Made by a program: the position numbers and the translations under genes. A DNA stretch of 64,000 nt, taken from the NCBI GenBank assembly GCA_020184695.1, contig JAANOX010000156.1, positions 1 to 64,000 on the forward strand, given 5' to 3'. Positions within the stretch are counted from its first letter, which is position 1. Every line of letters starts with the position of its first letter. The notes under the pieces are model-generated. The model ran no database searches. It was not told where the DNA came from and saw only the letters and a list, made by a program, of their open reading frames with translations. Source of the DNA: Histomonas meleagridis 2922-C6/04-290x (taxonomy: Eukaryota > Protista > Parabasalia). Below are positions 12,931 through 54,004 of this stretch, in pieces.

Positions 12931-13469
12931 TATTCCCGCTGAAGTTGCTAAAACTTATTTATTTTTAATTATTCTAATTACAAATTTATATGATATGAAA
13001 TCTTAAATGACCTCAAAATAGCAAATAAATTCTTCCTATAACACCATTCATGAATATACAATTTAGATAAATATATATACGGTATATTCTTTGATATAAA
13101 CTATAAGATCTAATGATAGTGTTTGATCAGATGAATGTGGAACAAGGAATAAAACTTTAATTTTTTTCCTTTTGCATTCTGTTAAAAAAATTAAATCCTA
13201 ATGTGAATGTAATCCATCCAAAATCAATCGTGCATTCCCCCCTCATAGTTCATTCATTTTCTTTTTTGTTGGACATGGGAAAAATATTCCATGTGTAAAT
13301 TGAATGAAAATAAATTTTAAATGTGGTATTTTTTTACCACCAAAATTGACATAGACTGTATATCGGAAAAATATGAAATTTCGACAGCTATAAATATACA
13401 ACCATATTTTTCATTTTATATTAAATTACTTTTATCAAATATGTCTAAGAACTCTCGGAAATAATGGTG

Positions 13470-13686
13470 GCAACTTTTTGAATCGAAAAAATTTAAAAAA
13501 ATTCTTTCGTACACAATTCTCGATATCGTTTTTTGACATTTTTTATGTTTCAAATTTTAAATGAACAATTACTAGCTGAAGCTGACACAATATCATCAGC
13601 AAATGTTCAACTGGAACAAAAAATACATATAATGAAATACCTATTATTCCGTGTTTATTCAAAAATGGATGGCTTGATGAGAATTA
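13470..13686. repeat. MITE-like pair of inward-facing arms related to the YR-cassette inverted repeat
   Basis: 13470-13521 is about 85% similar to 28455-28506; the reverse complement of 13670-13686 equals 28442-28458 exactly (TAATTCTCATCAAGCCA). Confidence 0.65.
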
Positions 13687-28441: not shown

Positions 28442-29404
28442 TAATTCTCATCAAGCCACTTTTTGAAATGAAAAAATTAAAAAAATTAATTTCGTTCACA
28501 ATTTTCAATTCAATTTAAAAATCGCAAAAATTTTATTGTTTATATAGAAAGTGCCTCTGAAATTTCCATACCAGCTCTGTTCATGTCTACTGAAACATAT
28601 CGAGTATATGCAGAACTTTTCCACCTTCCATGGGCTTTTATGATACAATCATTAACATTTTTTAGTGAGGCATAATATGCTGCTCCTCTACGAAAACAAT
28701 GAAATCCATAATTTTGATATTCTTCAACTCCAGTAGTCCTAAGTGCATAAAGAAGATGAGCTCTGAGTGTGGATTGAGTTCGAGATTCTATGTGATCATT
28801 ACTAGAAATTAAGTTCAAATAATTTATAAATCGGAATGGGCTATAATCTGTCTTATTATAATAAATATATGTAAACGTACCATTCCCGAACTGATCTGTT
28901 GTAGAAGTCTGTATGTTTAGTTTTATTAAGTTTTCGCCTTCGATTACAATATCGCTTTTTTTAAGGTTTAGCGCTTCACTTATTCTGAGCAATGCTGCAA
29001 ACATTAACGATATCAAGAATATAAACTTCAAATTATCAATATTTGTTGGTGGAAATTTTTCAATTATTTTCGAAAACCATTTTGGATCAAACGGTAACTT
29101 TGCATTCGGACAAAAACCTGAATATAGTGACCTCCTTATTCCACTCTTAAATATTTTGAATTTTATTAAATGTGTTAATATTTCCAAGTCATTTTGTTGA
29201 AAATAATGTGTAAAACTATTAATGTAAGCTAGTAACGTACAACATTTCATATTCTGATTCTTTTTAAATATAATGAATGCAACCATTTTGTCATGAGTAA
29301 TAGGAAATGGTTCTTCGTGTATTAGATTTAAAAACAATATTAAAAATTGTGAGCGAAATTACTTTTTTTAATTTTTTCATTTCAAAAAGTGTCGATGAGA
29401 ATTA
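28442..29404 (-). mobile_element. 963-bp tyrosine-recombinase cassette bounded by 62-64-bp inverted repeats
   Basis: 28442-28505 and the reverse complement of 29343-29404 match at about 59 of 64 positions; both start TAATTCTCATC and enclose the YR ORF. Confidence 0.75.
28540..29337 (-). pseudogene. DIRS/Crypton-like tyrosine recombinase (YR1), open frame but 5'-truncated
   Basis: PFPIT N-terminal domain, ALLRISE (R), HCFRRG (HxxR), AHGRWKSSAYTRY (W, Y). The catalytic Lys position reads STTDQ instead of SKTDQ. Track start is TTG; first ATG at 29286. Confidence 0.85.
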
Positions 29405-29410
29405 CACATA

Positions 29411-29469
29411 ATAAAGGCAACTTTTTAAGACGATGACCAAAGTTCATCGTCTTAAAAAGTTGCCTTTAT
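29411..29469. repeat. Perfect inverted repeat: 26-bp arms, 7-nt spacer
   Basis: ATAAAGGCAACTTTTTAAGACGATGA-CCAAAGT-TCATCGTCTTAAAAAGTTGCCTTTAT. Confidence 0.97.
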
Positions 29470-29486
29470 CATTTGTGAATTAACAA

Positions 29487-30400
29487 TTATTTATTACTCA
29501 AAAAGTCATTCTGCATTAAACAAACCACAAAAACCATGGTCAGCTTAGGCTCTAACCTCTTTTTCATTTTTTGATCACTTTTTGATAAGAGGTCATCGAA
29601 TTCATATATCTTAGCAATTATTTCTAATTTTTGAGCCCTTCCACTTTTTCTACATTCTTTTCTCACTCTTTGAACACAATTGTGATGGAATCGTGGAAAT
29701 GGAATAGAACATTTAAATTCCAACTTTTTGAATACTATGACACAGTATCATAGGTTTTTTTTTTTTTTTTTTGTTTTTTGTTTTTTAGATAATATATTCC
29801 CTTGTTCGATCAAGTTTTGTACAAAACGACAAGAGAATTGTCTATTTTTGATTCAAATTCCCCAAAAGATCCATACTTGTTTTAAACACCGTCCAACATT
29901 AATTTTCTTCAGCGAATTAAGTTACATCTATTTGAACAATTTCATCAGGATCATTTATAATAGGACATTATAAAGGCAAAACATATGCATCACAAGCATT
30001 TAGAAATAAAGTAAATTAATAAGTCACTGTGTTTCTGTTCACTCCTACTTCTCTGGCAGTATCCTTCCAATTTTGATACCCCCATCAATTTAATAAATGA
30101 AAAATTTTGAAAGTGGTATATTTGCTGAATGAAAAATACTTCTATATAGAATACTTTTTGATTTATGGCATTTTGGGCATATCTATTTTAAAATCTTTTG
30201 AAGAACTCTGAGTACATTTTCATATTTTATTTGCAGTCTTCATATATTATTTGAATGTAGATAATACCCTTTTATATGAGGTAGTACTGCTAATGCAAGA
30301 AATGTCGATGGGAAATGCGCAATTATAACATCTGTCTTGCATTAGCAATATTATTGAAATTCAAAATTATCAAAAATAGTAAATCATCCATTTTTTAGCA
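29487..30400 (-). mobile_element. Merlin (IS1595/ISXO2-like) transposase pseudogene
   Basis: Across frameshifts: ICPKCHKSKSI, TAREVGVNRNTV, EIVQID, NVGRCLKQVWIFWGI, FHHNCV...IYEFD, which is the ISXO2 motif order. Confidence 0.65.
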
Positions 30401-30904
30401 TTACTTGAATCCAAAATCAAATCACTAATACCAACAGAAATAGAGTATGTGTTTTCTATCATAAAATAAAAAAAATTGACTTTAGTCATGAGTACCCATT
30501 GTTACATTATATTCGGAATTACGATAGAAAATTTGAAAACTCTTAACATAAAATTTACAACAGATATTTATATGATCGATATTGTTATGAAAATTGGAAC
30601 CATTATATTGTGAAATGAGTTTTGTATCAAATATTAATTAATAAACAATTTTCAAATTTTAATTTATTTATGTAATTATATTTTATTTCGATATAATTTG
30701 TATTGATTATGGCGCCGTTTTTTTGCATTATTATGAAAGATATTCCACCTTTCCCAATTATTGGAATCGAATAAGCAAACTGTAAAGAATTAAGTGAAGA
30801 TTGGTTTCTATTGTAAATTTTTTATTTCCTTTCTGAAGGTTTCGTACTTTTGCTTTTTGTGCTTTCGTTTTTGGCGACATCAAAAAATGTTAACGGTTAT
30901 GGTT

Positions 30905-31023
30905 GCCACTTTTTGAATTGAGCAAAAATGAAGATTGGAAAAAATTCATATGTAGTCCCTGGTTTCGAAATATTTTTACAATGTGATTGACTTTTCGAAT
31001 TCAAAGTTCACAATTTTCAATTC
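30905..31023 (+). repeat. Third copy of the YR-cassette terminal motifs
   Basis: GCCACTTTTTGAATTGA (16/17 versus 28455-28471) and GTTCACAATTTTCAATTC (18/18 versus 28494-28511), with a longer spacer between them. Confidence 0.6.
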
Positions 31024-31287
31024 TCTCAGATTGAATGCCTCTCAATTTTGATATCAAAACGATAAAGTCTGAATTTATGGTTTTATTTATTGATTTAACG
31101 GTCATCCGAAGAATAAGTCGAAAAAAATTAATTTTATTTATTTTTTATAATTATATACAATATATTTTTTCTGAATTATCATATGAATAAAATCTGTAAA
31201 TACTTCATATTTACTAAGATATTCATATTTTAAAAACTTAATTTTGAATTGATATCTGGCCGGACTAATGCAATTGCTTTTGTTATC

Positions 31288-31400
31288 CATCCCGGCACGA
31301 AATGCGTATACTCAGTGTCGAATATAAGTATCACTCCTCTACCTTCCATGTTTCTTCGTGACACCATTCTGGATCCCATTTTCACTTAGCGAAATTTCAT
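31288..31400 (-). pseudogene. Tyrosine recombinase C-terminal remnant (YR4)
   Basis: SENGIQNGVTKKHGR*RSDTYIRH*VYAFRAGM versus YR1 NVNDCIIKAHGRWKSSAYTRYVSVDMNRAGM. Confidence 0.55.
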
Positions 31401-32746: not shown

Positions 32747-33436
32747 CTAAAACCGTTGATAATGAACGATCAAAATCAACTCAAAAAACAGGTAATGTCA
32801 AAATATGATAGACAGAAATTGAATGTACGATAGGATAATCCAAATCCAAAAAGTGAAACAAATATTACGTCATCCAATATACCAAAAAATCAGATAAAGA
32901 TATTCTAAAAATATACATAATTACACTGATATGTAAATAATTGTTAATACATCTTCATCCGGAAGAAACATTAGGGATATTGAGAACCTTTGTTGTAAAA
33001 ATTACAACAAGAATAATCGAGAAAATTAATTGACGGATTAATATGATGGATGATCAAACTAATCAAATTCTCATGAACTATTAGCGTCATTTATAAACAT
33101 GCACAACAAAAATTTCTTGATCACAATAATATAACAAATCGCGTAAGAGGATTCTAAAAATGGCACCAGTGCTTCACAATTTCGGATATAAAATAAGTTG
33201 GCGTGTTCAAATGCATTAAACCAGAAGACCTGAAATAAAACAATATAGTGATAACGATATAAAATTATTAATAATGAAATTAGAAAGTGGAAAAACAGGA
33301 GTAACACAATATTAACTGATGTAACAGGAGAGTTTTTAGTTCGTCATGTTTATCACAACCTTATTTAAAAAAGAATTGTTTATCGTGAAAAATTGAATGA
33401 CGATAGATTTTTTATCAATTTATCATATGCCCTTAA

Positions 33437-34307
<871 letters not shown>

Positions 34308-50000: not shown

Positions 50001-50233
50001 TTATTGGGTCTTTACTGTAATTGTATCTCCAGCCTCAATCATTTGGATAGAAGTATAACGTTGATAGCATGAAGAAATCCATCTTCCTTGGGCTTTAATT
50101 TTGCAATCAGCAATTCCAGCCAATGATGCTTCATGAGCGGCCCCTTTACGAAAAGAATATGTTGAATAACATTCTGGATTCACTCCAATTTTTTTTTATG
50201 CAATTTAAACTTTCTCCTAACTGTTCTATCACA
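50001..50233 (-). pseudogene. Tyrosine recombinase C-terminal remnant (YR3)
   Basis: IGVNPECYSTYSFRKGAAHEASLAGIADCKIKAQGRWISSCYQRY; cut off at TA 50234-50235. Confidence 0.85.
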
Positions 50234-51780: not shown

Positions 51781-51898
51781 TAAATTGCAATTTTTTCCTT
51801 TCCTATATGAGATATCATAGTCTAAATAAATCTCTATACGCAAAAGAATAATTCAAATCATTTATATAAATATGAATAATTAAAACAAGACTATCCTA

Positions 51899-53154
51899 CA
51901 ACCGTGGGCAATTTGAATACTGCCTCTTCAAAAAGTGGAGGCCCCATTCAATCATAATGAAGAATTTGAACTAGGTGTAATTCGCATTCAAAAATTGGCT
52001 CTCAATTCGTTTTCTGGACAAATATTTTCATTCAATTTCATTTCGAATAATTTACAATTTCCGCTATGTTTTTTGGACAAGAATAAAATTTGGCAAATAT
52101 GGTGTGGAATGAATGTTGTAATATCTCATTTTCCGCTTTTCGATTCTTATTGTTTCATGTTAATTCTCATCTATAAGCGCTCATTGTTACTAACTGTATT
52201 TGTTTTCACTTGTATGTGTTTATTTCATTGTTTCATGTTAATTCTCACTTATATGTGCTAATTCTCATTTATTCTCATTTATTTTCACTTACTTATAATA
52301 TATTTTTATTCTCACTTATATGTGTTTCTTTTCATTATTTTATGTACCAACATCTGCTCAAATCATTCAAATATAATTTGGCAAATATATAATTTGAACG
52401 ACTTTCATTTGATATAGATAATACATAGTGAACATGGGGTTTAGTTAAAGATGAATTCAAACTTATTCTAATATCAGAAATAAAGCTCATATGATTAATT
52501 ATATTCAAAAAGTTTACAAATCAATGTTTACATTATTATTTCAATGAGCAATCGATTTAATTATTTCCATCCAACTTCCACATAACATTGTATATTTTTT
52601 CTTTTTATTTTAATTGCTCTGATCGTTGTATAGATTAAATTTTATAAAATTTTAAACTAATAAAACATAATTAATATGTAGAACATGACAATTCACAAAA
52701 ATTTATATACGAAGCAATTGATATTATTGCTCAATCTGTAAAATATTAATTAAGTCAAAAATGAATTTTAATGTAACATTGATATAAAATTTGTGTTGTA
52801 ATACAGAGACGATTAAATATTTTACAATATCCTTTTTCTTGATCGTAATTTATTTTGATAATAATAATTGTTTTTTTTGATTCATTTTAATTAATGCAAT
52901 GTATAATGTATGCAATGTCGATAACTTGCTATTTAATAATATTTGTTTCAGCATCTATGCCGAATTTTATTTTCGTTTAAAAAACATGGCGAAAATCGTA
53001 AATTATTCAAAATGATATTGAATGAAAATATTTCTTTAGAAAAAAAATTGAAAGTTAATTTTTGAATGCAAATTACACCTAGTTCAAATTCTTCATCACG
53101 ATTGAATTAAGTCTCCACTTTTTGAATACTACCTATTCAAATTTCCCACGGTTG
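51899..53154. mobile_element. Non-autonomous element with about 160-bp TIRs and TA duplication
   Basis: Termini CAACCGTGGG(C/A)AATTTGAATA; TA at 51897-51898 and 53155-53156; arms align over about 160 bp including an identical ATGAAGAATTTGAACTAGGTGTAATT. No coding content; internal degenerate repeat at 52150-52340. Confidence 0.85.
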
Positions 53155-54004
53155 TAGAACAGTACCATTAATTGTTAAAAACATTCAAAATTGGAAAAAA
53201 TTATACGAACTTTCCACGCACCCTATAATTAATAAGATAATTTTCTGCTATAATCAAAATTATTCAGAATGATAGCTCTGTGAATTGAGAATGATTCATC
53301 AAGACCCAAAAAATAAAAAATTAGAAATGAGTATTCAAGATTATTAACTTGAATAAATTAGTTCTAAATAATGGAGAATGAGACACGAACAACTTAATAA
53401 TATCTAAACAATAATCACAAGAGATACAAACAACTAAACGAGGCACCAATAGCAATTAATTGTAGCGCATTAACTTGGAGTCGGATAAATAGTATTAAAT
53501 GATTAATAGTCGTATTTAATGAGTGAATTAGTATCAGGTGACTTTACCTTTAATGCCTACAAAAATATACATTAGGGAAAAAAGCACAAAATCTTTCACT
53601 TTTTTGCGATTCATTTAATTTTACTGGAGTTGGTTGCCAATTAATCCTTTTTCTTTTTGACAACATTACTAAAAGTAAATATACTTATTGTTCTGTTCAA
53701 AAACAAATAATGAGACAAATGAGAGGGTTCGAACTACTAAATATTATCCGAGACCAGAGCATCCCAGTATTTCATTATATTGTCAAAAGATGTGAGCCGA
53801 AATTCTAGCAATGTCTTTCCATTACGGCTATGAATATGCAATGTTAACTCTCACTCTAAATAATAAGCGGGTAGATTTAGATCCAAAAAAGCGTACTGAC
53901 ATTTATCTTATCATTGTTGTAAAGTTAGTCAATTTTGCAAAAAATGCACTGATACAACTTCAGTACTATTGTAATTGATTATCATATCATTATTCATTTT
54001 TATG

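Follow-up and report, generated by a model that had tools for sequence, protein, structure and literature searches.

The locus described here lies in a 64,000-nt stretch of the Histomonas meleagridis 2922-C6/04-290x genome (contig JAANOX010000156.1, positions 1 to 64,000, referred to below as the window), which is AT-rich with a G+C content of 23-36%. A tyrosine recombinase (YR) frame of 265 codons is found on the minus strand at positions 28540..29337, and it is the only long frame between two arms of an inverted repeat. The arms, at 28457-28523 and 29325-29391, form an ungapped inverted repeat of 67 nt with 87% complementarity, and when a 2-nt indel is allowed the match extends outward to TAATTCTCATC at 28442 and 29404. 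Overall, the repeats around the minus-strand YR frame measure 64-67 bp with identities of 87-92%. A first-pass annotation, made from the sequence of the window, had described a YR gene enclosed in its own inverted repeats and forming the only content between them, and this description stands. The ungapped arm score is 44, compared with a maximum of 21 and a median of 8 in control pairs of the same geometry from elsewhere in the window (n = 391), and a chance inverted repeat is thereby ruled out. In addition, the arm core has two sites in the window, both of them at these arms, with an expected number of 0.

The limits of the mobile unit are a different matter. The first-pass annotation had proposed a 963-bp unit (28442-29404), but sequence comparison shows the unit to be larger, as it includes a palindrome directly outside of the right boundary and runs on through it to position 29477. 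The whole element copy, a 5′-deleted derivative, occupies 28443..29477 on the minus strand (1,035 bp) and in gene orientation consists of a palindrome (a-loop-a′), a repeat (b), the YR gene and a second repeat (b′). These limits come from an alignment to two loci of relatives, L001 and L011, from the flank divergence in 10 contigs of the nearest relative, and from the ends of a deleted copy at 13459-13685. Repeat arm b′ (28443..28523) is the true 3′ terminus; it ends with GAGAATT (28443-28449, in the minus-strand reading) and has the box CACTTTTTGA at 28457-28466. Repeat arm b (29325..29403) is internal and not terminal, with an outer end that reads TAATTCTCATC (29394-29404, minus strand) and a box at 29382-29391. 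The palindrome (29404..29477, 73 bp, a′-loop-a) has 33-nt arms, a 7-nt loop CCAAAGT at 29437-29443 and a CAACTTTTT box in each arm, and its outer arm is the true 5′ terminus. The flanking AATT at 29478..29481 is repeated at 28443-28446 inside the other end, such that AATT is present at both junctions of the window copy. It is the sole direct repeat at the ends and a candidate for the crossover core.

The YR frame of the window copy opens with TTG and has no ATG. Compared with L001 and L011, ~137 bp have been lost at a deletion junction at 29320..29325 (near 29322/29323), and the loss comprises the 5′ leader, the ATG and ~37 codons; the absence of the first helix and the ATG had been noted at the outset. 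Of the catalytic residues, R (LRISE), HxxR (HCFRRG), W (HGRWKS) and Y (TRYVS) are intact, as first read. At the invariant catalytic Lys the codon is ACA for Thr (28900..28902, minus strand), also as first read, and alignment to the family shows that SKTDQ has changed to STTDQ. A Cys replaces the invariant Ser of HSFRRG, adjacent to the His. The catalytic R-K-H-R-(W/H)-Y set is thus complete in the family and incomplete in the window copy (Lys to Thr). The Pfam Phage_integrase match of the window frame (E-value 2.6e-4, 21.3 bits) is below the cut-off of 27.1, and the 302-aa full-length relative P0001, to which the frame is 75% identical, clears the cut-off with 28.2 bits. With no start codon and with the Lys to Thr and Ser to Cys changes, the window copy is no source of enzyme, and it is predicted to be dead. 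However, both ends are retained and the copy therefore might be mobilised in trans.

Full-length relatives of 298-304 aa with 40-77% identity were found in a protein search, mostly in short metagenome contigs; the sole named homologues are hypothetical proteins of Tritrichomonas foetus. In an alignment of 58 sequences, R154, K182, R253 and W276 are invariant, and H250 and Y284 nearly so. The first-pass annotation had looked to full-length copies with the catalytic Lys and the same type of arms as a check on its reading, and such copies exist among the relatives: the Lys is invariant in the 58 members and the repeats are lineage-specific. An AlphaFold2 model of P0001, with a predicted local distance difference test (pLDDT) score of 96 and a predicted template modelling (pTM) score of 0.88, displays the two-domain YR fold, i.e., a core-binding helical domain and a catalytic domain. 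When the model was compared with the PDB by Foldseek, the 32 best matches were Cre chains over the full length, with E-values down to 3e-11 and template modelling (TM) scores up to 0.80 (0.75-0.80 in the best 30). Cre is also the best sequence match among solved structures (E-value ~1e-6). Judged from the model, the family protein is a compact and simple Cre-like YR without an arm-binding domain.

Comparison of the window copy with L001 gave a ratio of nonsynonymous to synonymous substitutions (dN/dS) of 0.056, with saturation at synonymous sites, and by this measure the gene is under strong purifying selection. Identity between the window copy and L001 is 95% in the outer part of b and 83% in b′, but 49% at third codon positions. 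The repeat ends are more conserved than third codon positions and can therefore be regarded as conserved cis elements.

DNA of the relatives was retrieved for a comparison of layouts, a total of 67 loci. The full layout, a-loop-a′-b-YR-b′, is present in six lineages: that of the window copy and those of P0001 (L001-L007), P0002 (L011), P0164 (L018), P0174 (L058/L059) and P0036 (L062/L063). The latter five are from animal-gut metagenomes, and in them the palindrome is upstream of arm b with a gap of a few to ~30 bp. Five further lineages (L013, L015, L016, L017 and L022), T. foetus included, have flanking repeats, with flanks that are too short or too decayed for the palindrome to be judged. 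Of 11 lineages with usable flanks, 10 have inverted repeats, with lengths from 18 to 67 nt. The repeat-plus-YR layout is kept across lineages that are 27-77% identical in protein, and the repeats have co-diverged and are specific to each lineage. There is one open reading frame per ~1.1-kb unit, the YR being the sole gene. No reverse transcriptase (RT) was found near the window unit, in agreement with the first-pass annotation, or within 5 kb in the T. foetus loci. The orientation of the gene relative to the palindrome is identical in every copy with enough flank, in all six lineages. In intact relatives the ATG is preceded, at a distance of 10-30 nt, by a TCA-type initiator-like motif, and TAAA is found at the stop, in keeping with parabasalid gene signals. 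The possibility that the palindrome is a separate, neighboring miniature inverted-repeat transposable element (MITE) was considered and ruled out: it is found near the internal repeat in six lineages with a lineage-specific sequence, and the flanks diverge outside of it and not between palindrome and repeat.

Evidence for mobility comes from the junctions. Ten contigs encode an identical P0001 protein in differing flanks. On the upstream side their identity begins exactly at CACAAATAATG, the outer palindrome arm, and on the downstream side it continues through GGTGAGAATT, with divergence after a few more target-like bases. Alignment shows end sequences common to the window copy, L001 and L011, and the terminal motif TGRTGAGAATT is present in L001-L011 and in L012 of T. 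foetus (40% protein identity). In the relatives, the GAGAATT of the right end is followed by C. The element has the same termini in the genome analysed here, because the deleted copy at 13459-13685 has the same two ends: it starts with palindrome-arm sequence and ends with GATGAGAATT.

Important is the comparison of a filled and an empty site. When the two flanks of the element in L005 are joined, they align end to end with an uninterrupted paralogue, L001:1614-1782. The sequence TTCA occurs once in the empty paralogous site and on both sides of the filled L005 site. From sequence alone, the crossover point is resolved to the shared 4-6 bp. Thus the empty site that the first-pass annotation had proposed to look for was found in paralogous form for the relative in L005, but not for the window locus in the assembled contigs. 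It should also be mentioned that the insertions in L001, L002, L005 and L006 recur in one spacer of a repeated ankyrin-like gene array (...GIDINAKD...; e.g., L005:1-81 and L001:1614-1782).

The family is abundant. A profile search of 1.84 billion representatives gave 100 matches at E<1e-30 and 2,518 at E<1e-10. The best 150 profile matches are nearly all stand-alone proteins of ~300 aa, and their contigs, where looked up, are ~1.0-5.4 kb in length, mostly 1.0-1.6 kb, and stop at repeats. In four sequencing runs of the organism, contig word depth rises from ~500-560 in the flanks to 2,000-27,000 within the element and is highest at the repeats. The depth corresponds to ~4-55 copy-equivalents and fits tens of copies plus shorter derivatives. 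One of the run contigs skips the interior of the element (28520 to 29330), and others break in the repeat and at the palindrome center.

As to the host range, the neighboring glucokinase gene belongs to a cluster of Parabasalia sequences. In 185,579 prokaryote species genomes partial identity to the family did not exceed 26%, and IMG/VR contained no relatives; on this basis a bacterial or viral origin of the metagenome relatives was rejected. Distant stand-alone relatives are present in molluscs, sponges, oomycetes, basidiomycetes and a tardigrade, and the nearest Atlas clusters consist of unnamed eukaryotic “phage integrase” proteins of molluscs, sponges, oomycetes and basidiomycetes.

The best explanation, to which we assign a rough probability of 0.77, is that 28443-29477 represents a dead copy of a multi-copy parabasalid family of mobile elements of ~1.1-1.2 kb, whose sole gene encodes a Cre-like YR of ~300 aa. 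The family would be Crypton-like, i.e., YR-only, with a DIRS-1-like internal inverted copy of the circle junction. The likeness to Cryptons is one of gene content and layout and not of placement in a tree. The proposal in the first-pass annotation of an undescribed YR-driven element with terminal inverted repeats is therefore borne out in part: the layout is conserved, the flanks vary and a filled and empty site pair is found, but the upstream repeat is internal and the window copy is defective. In the literature searched, which had Repbase and the T. vaginalis genome paper outside of its scope, no description of YR elements in parabasalids was found, and none was found of such recombinase-only, repeat-flanked elements.

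How the element may move can be outlined from its anatomy. The termini are a, the outer palindrome arm, and b′, and the internal a′b is an inverted copy of the joined ends. The YR would bind to the CAAAAAG(T)GGC-type boxes in a, a′, b and b′ and recombine the two ends, such that the element is excised as a circle. The circle would then be re-inserted at AT-rich sites by a conservative crossover in the short AATT(CA) core, and insertion would leave no duplication beyond the shared 4 bp. The basis for inferring excision, a circle and insertion at AATT(CA) is the comparison of filled with empty sites, together with the shared core of 4 bp and what has been described for simple YRs and Cryptons (PMC3212892).

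The boxes and the palindrome have several properties that bear on this outline. A CTTTTTG/CAAAAAG box is present in each of a, a′, b and b′, and in some lineages there is a second box deeper in b/b′. The joined ends are surrounded by two inverted boxes with a spacing of 31-34 bp, as is a′|b. The internal a′b is the reverse complement of the joined ends b′|a, with pairing over ~110 bp. When folded, the joined ends form one near-perfect hairpin with arms of ~110 bp and a free energy (dG) of -87 kcal/mol for the window copy and -93 kcal/mol for L001; the few mismatches are clustered at the junction. The palindrome arms are wholly different between lineages, but the C-GAA-G center is kept: centers are CCGAAGG in L001 and L011, GCGAAGC in L018 and L059, GCGCAGC in L062 and a degenerate CCAAAGT in the window copy. 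The oligonucleotide d(GCGAAGC) is a notably stable DNA mini-hairpin.

Among copies that encode an identical protein, the loop reads either GAA or TTC in two lineages (L001 vs L005, and L059 vs L058). The flips in L005 and L058 look real, as there are asymmetric bases within one k-mer of the loop, and the “flip” in L004 coincides with the end of a contig, where palindromic k-mers can produce such an artefact. The GAA/TTC variation is treated here as evidence, at the level of sequence, that the hairpin forms in vivo. However, it was not accepted as proof of an inversion catalysed by the YR, since only the loop and a perfect stem are involved, as in replication template switching. Loop-only inversions in hairpins are a common outcome of template switches during replication.

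With its internal inverted site, the circle would have two inverted sites around a tiny loop, a topology like that of the 2-micron plasmid with Flp. Alternatively, in single-stranded form, the ends may fold into one long hairpin, which is the topology of the CTX-phage attP. By analogy with these systems, the element may recombine via folded or cruciform DNA, either with a one-strand hairpin as attP or as a 2-micron-like circle that is flipped and thereby amplified. The conserved palindrome, its C-GAA-G mini-hairpin and the internal inverted copy of the circle junction would then have a function in recombination. This extension of the mechanism is tentative, and considerably less probable than the identification of the family itself.

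Several points weigh against the identification of the family as given above. Read-level evidence consists of the assembled Logan contigs of the four runs, in which rare forms are invisible, and no excision product, circle junction, empty allele of the locus or inverted form was present in them. The joined-end sequence is also absent from the 67 retrieved loci. Flanking repeats are absent from one lineage, L060/L061, and in the T. foetus copies the ends are weaker or degenerate and a clear palindrome is lacking. Most of the relatives come from unbinned metagenome contigs, and their hosts are therefore inferred. The proposed binding to the boxes, and the exact crossover point within AATT(CA), are likewise readings of the sequence.

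Other explanations were weighed against a stand-alone YR element. A larger single-strand or rolling-circle element that integrates might be the source of the small units, which would represent its recombination module without Rep, the palindrome resembling an origin. The conserved C-GAA-G mini-hairpin at the center of the palindrome would be in keeping with this, as would a weak Rep_OBD match in a mollusc relative, P0071. However, no Rep is encoded near any of the YR pieces in the window, IMG/VR has no relatives, and units that encode the same protein in differing surroundings measure ~1.17 kb in complete form and have no Rep. The P0071 protein, with 1,111 aa and repeated stretches, looks mis-joined. 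This origin is considered unlikely.

Little weight is likewise given to a deletion derivative of a DIRS-type retrotransposon that has lost RT and RNase H and is moved in trans by RT-bearing masters. The repeat logic is that of DIRS-1, in which the termini are accompanied by an internal segment that is complementary to both extremities (PMC6681497), and YRs of a similar fold are fused or adjacent to RT in cnidarians. Set against this are the stand-alone, ~300-aa nature of nearly all of the best 150 profile matches, the short contigs (~1.0-5.4 kb) and the T. foetus loci devoid of RT described above, and the fact that no RT-bearing relative was found among the parabasalid-like matches. In addition, the deleted copies in the window derive from the 1.1-kb form.

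The first-pass annotation had also raised an invertible cassette of the Flp/Fim type, in which the YR would flip the segment between the inverted repeats and switch its own or a neighbor's expression. A YR between inverted repeats is indeed the topology of such a cassette, and the 3-nt loop that reads GAA or TTC with an identical protein in two lineages could be seen as its product, although loop-only flips are also produced commonly by template switching. However, the gene has a single orientation relative to the palindrome in all copies with enough flank, from six lineages. The flanks of this mobile unit are unrelated from copy to copy, and the repeats enclose neither a host gene nor a promoter. 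A cassette is thus highly unlikely.

Least credible is the further suggestion that a YR gene fragment was captured by a MITE of the Tc1/mariner or pogo type, non-autonomous and dependent on a DDE transposase. In its favor, the window arms begin and end with TA, and CACTTTTTGA is over-represented in the window (7 matches vs 0.5 expected) and recurs in an unrelated element at 51890-53163, within its 215-bp inverted repeats. However, the relatives end with GAGAATT then C and hence show no TA target duplication, and the repeats vary by lineage yet stay paired and co-evolve with their own YR gene. Purifying selection acts on that gene, and the upstream limit of the unit is in reality the palindrome and not the repeat. 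The 12-mer shared with the unrelated element also has the opposite polarity relative to the terminus.

The unrelated element at 51890-53163 is ~1.27 kb in length, has 215-nt inverted repeats that are 83% identical, and displays no long open reading frame. Its arms contain the 12-mer TTCAAAAAGTGG, which is also in the ends of the YR element, in opposite polarity. This may be the “pogo end” in which arm sequence had been reported initially.

Four more pieces of YR elements are found in the same 64-kb window. The second copy, at 13459..13685 on the plus strand, is internally deleted to ~227 bp; the palindrome-arm start is fused to repeat b at the CTTTTTG box and is followed by the leader, an ATG, ~30 codons and the terminal GATGAGAATT. 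A degenerate YR relative from a divergent subfamily is at 33380..34237 (minus strand), with a recognisable N-terminal half that has 28% identity to P0001 (E-value 2e-10). A C-terminal YR fragment of ~60 aa at 50016..50195 (minus strand) is 38-53% identical to family members. The evidence is weak for a probable remnant copy at 30890..31390 (minus strand), which consists of box-bearing, repeat-like sequence (CACTTTTTGA at 30907 and TTCACAATTTTCA at ~31006) and a 33-aa C-terminal match at 31291-31386. At 29968-30074 there is a short repeat of very high copy number, with a contig word depth of ~24,000 compared with ~560 in unique flanks.

Some relatives show arrangements that differ from the standard layout. 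In L021:280-480 two diverged elements of the P0164 lineage abut, whereby the right end of one is followed by 2 nt and then by the internal-type repeat of the next (...CAGTGAATT ac AATTCTGTG...). There is no separate palindrome at the L021 junction, and the contig stops before the downstream end. The abutment could be a tandem or nested insertion into a resident end, or an alternative opening of the circle. In L003:105-160 a lone outer palindrome arm and loop are joined to an inverted paralogous ankyrin-like flank, as a result of either rearrangement at the hairpin or chimeric assembly. The P0174-lineage element of L058 is preceded by a RadA/Sms-like gene (AAA_25, DnaB_C, Lon_C) at L058:1-1224, at a distance of 150 bp from the palindrome. 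A distant animal relative, P0071 of Tegillarca granosa, is a single gene model of 1,111 aa in which five stretches resemble YRs and Rep_OBD is matched weakly; it is probably a mis-joined array or gene model.

The interest lies in the family and the architecture of its ends rather than in the damaged window copy. Cryptons are poorly understood, in part for lack of a reconstituted transposition reaction and because it is difficult to define where the elements end. The family described here offers sharp ends, a confidently modelled enzyme of Cre size, candidate boxes, filled and empty sites and many diverged lineages, and would be a tractable system for the study of excision and integration of YR-only elements. 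Its repeat layout links the DNA-only Cryptons to DIRS-1, whose internal complementary region was explained only via reverse transcription. If a structured-DNA substrate is indeed used, this would be the first eukaryotic YR transposon known to do so, and the elements would be among the smallest autonomous mobile elements of eukaryotes. Genome engineering could also profit from compact Cre-like recombinases that are adapted to eukaryotes and have new site specificities. For genome annotation, the family accounts for many short stand-alone “integrase” frames together with inverted repeats.

Among known systems, Cryptons are YR-only elements with short (4-6 bp) direct repeats at the ends that would serve as the crossover substrate, and are proposed to move by excision of a circle followed by site-specific re-integration (PMC3212892). 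Similar to them, the elements described here have a single YR gene and no RT/RNase H, and their 4-bp terminal direct repeats (TTCA in the relative and AATT in the window copy) can be read as a crossover core with no true target duplication. However, the definition of Cryptons, in recent papers as well, excludes terminal inverted repeats (PMC3212892; PMC13465315). In the present family there are inverted repeats of 30-67 bp, together with a palindrome and, inside the element, an inverted copy of the circle junction. The units are also much smaller (~1.1-1.2 kb), and Pfam finds no DUF3504.

In DIRS-1 an internal region is complementary to the beginning and the end of the element (PMC6681497). 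The a′b sequence is complementary to b′|a in a comparable way, and the YR is of the R-K-H-R-W-Y type, but the likeness is in layout only. The family is DNA-only and ~1.1 kb in length, without RT, RNase H or methyltransferase, and unlike the case in DIRS-1 the two termini are not mutual inverted copies apart from the short box.

With Cre/loxP of phage P1 the family shares a simple two-domain YR with no arm-binding domain and a Trp at the fifth catalytic position. However, protein identity is 14-17%, the sites are not lox-like, the boxes are 31-34 bp apart and the host is eukaryotic. In the 2-micron plasmid, a YR gene and two inverted recombination sites split the circle into two unique parts and allow flipping. 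The predicted circle would similarly have a YR gene and two inverted sites, as in Flp/FRT, but the second unique part is here 3-17 nt, and the protein is Cre-like and not Flp-like. No plasmid form, origin or partition genes were seen for this family.

The CTX attP(+), a substrate of XerCD, and the integron attC, a substrate of IntI, are folded single-strand recombination substrates. Unlike these, the elements are in a eukaryotic host, and the comparison extends to folding potential and the C-GAA-G center alone. The likeness is in topology: a duplex site arises when two inverted half-regions pair on folding, and in the folded joined ends of the elements the mismatches are concentrated around the crossover region. 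As in these systems, after integration one end keeps a hairpin-like inverted pair and the other a single arm.

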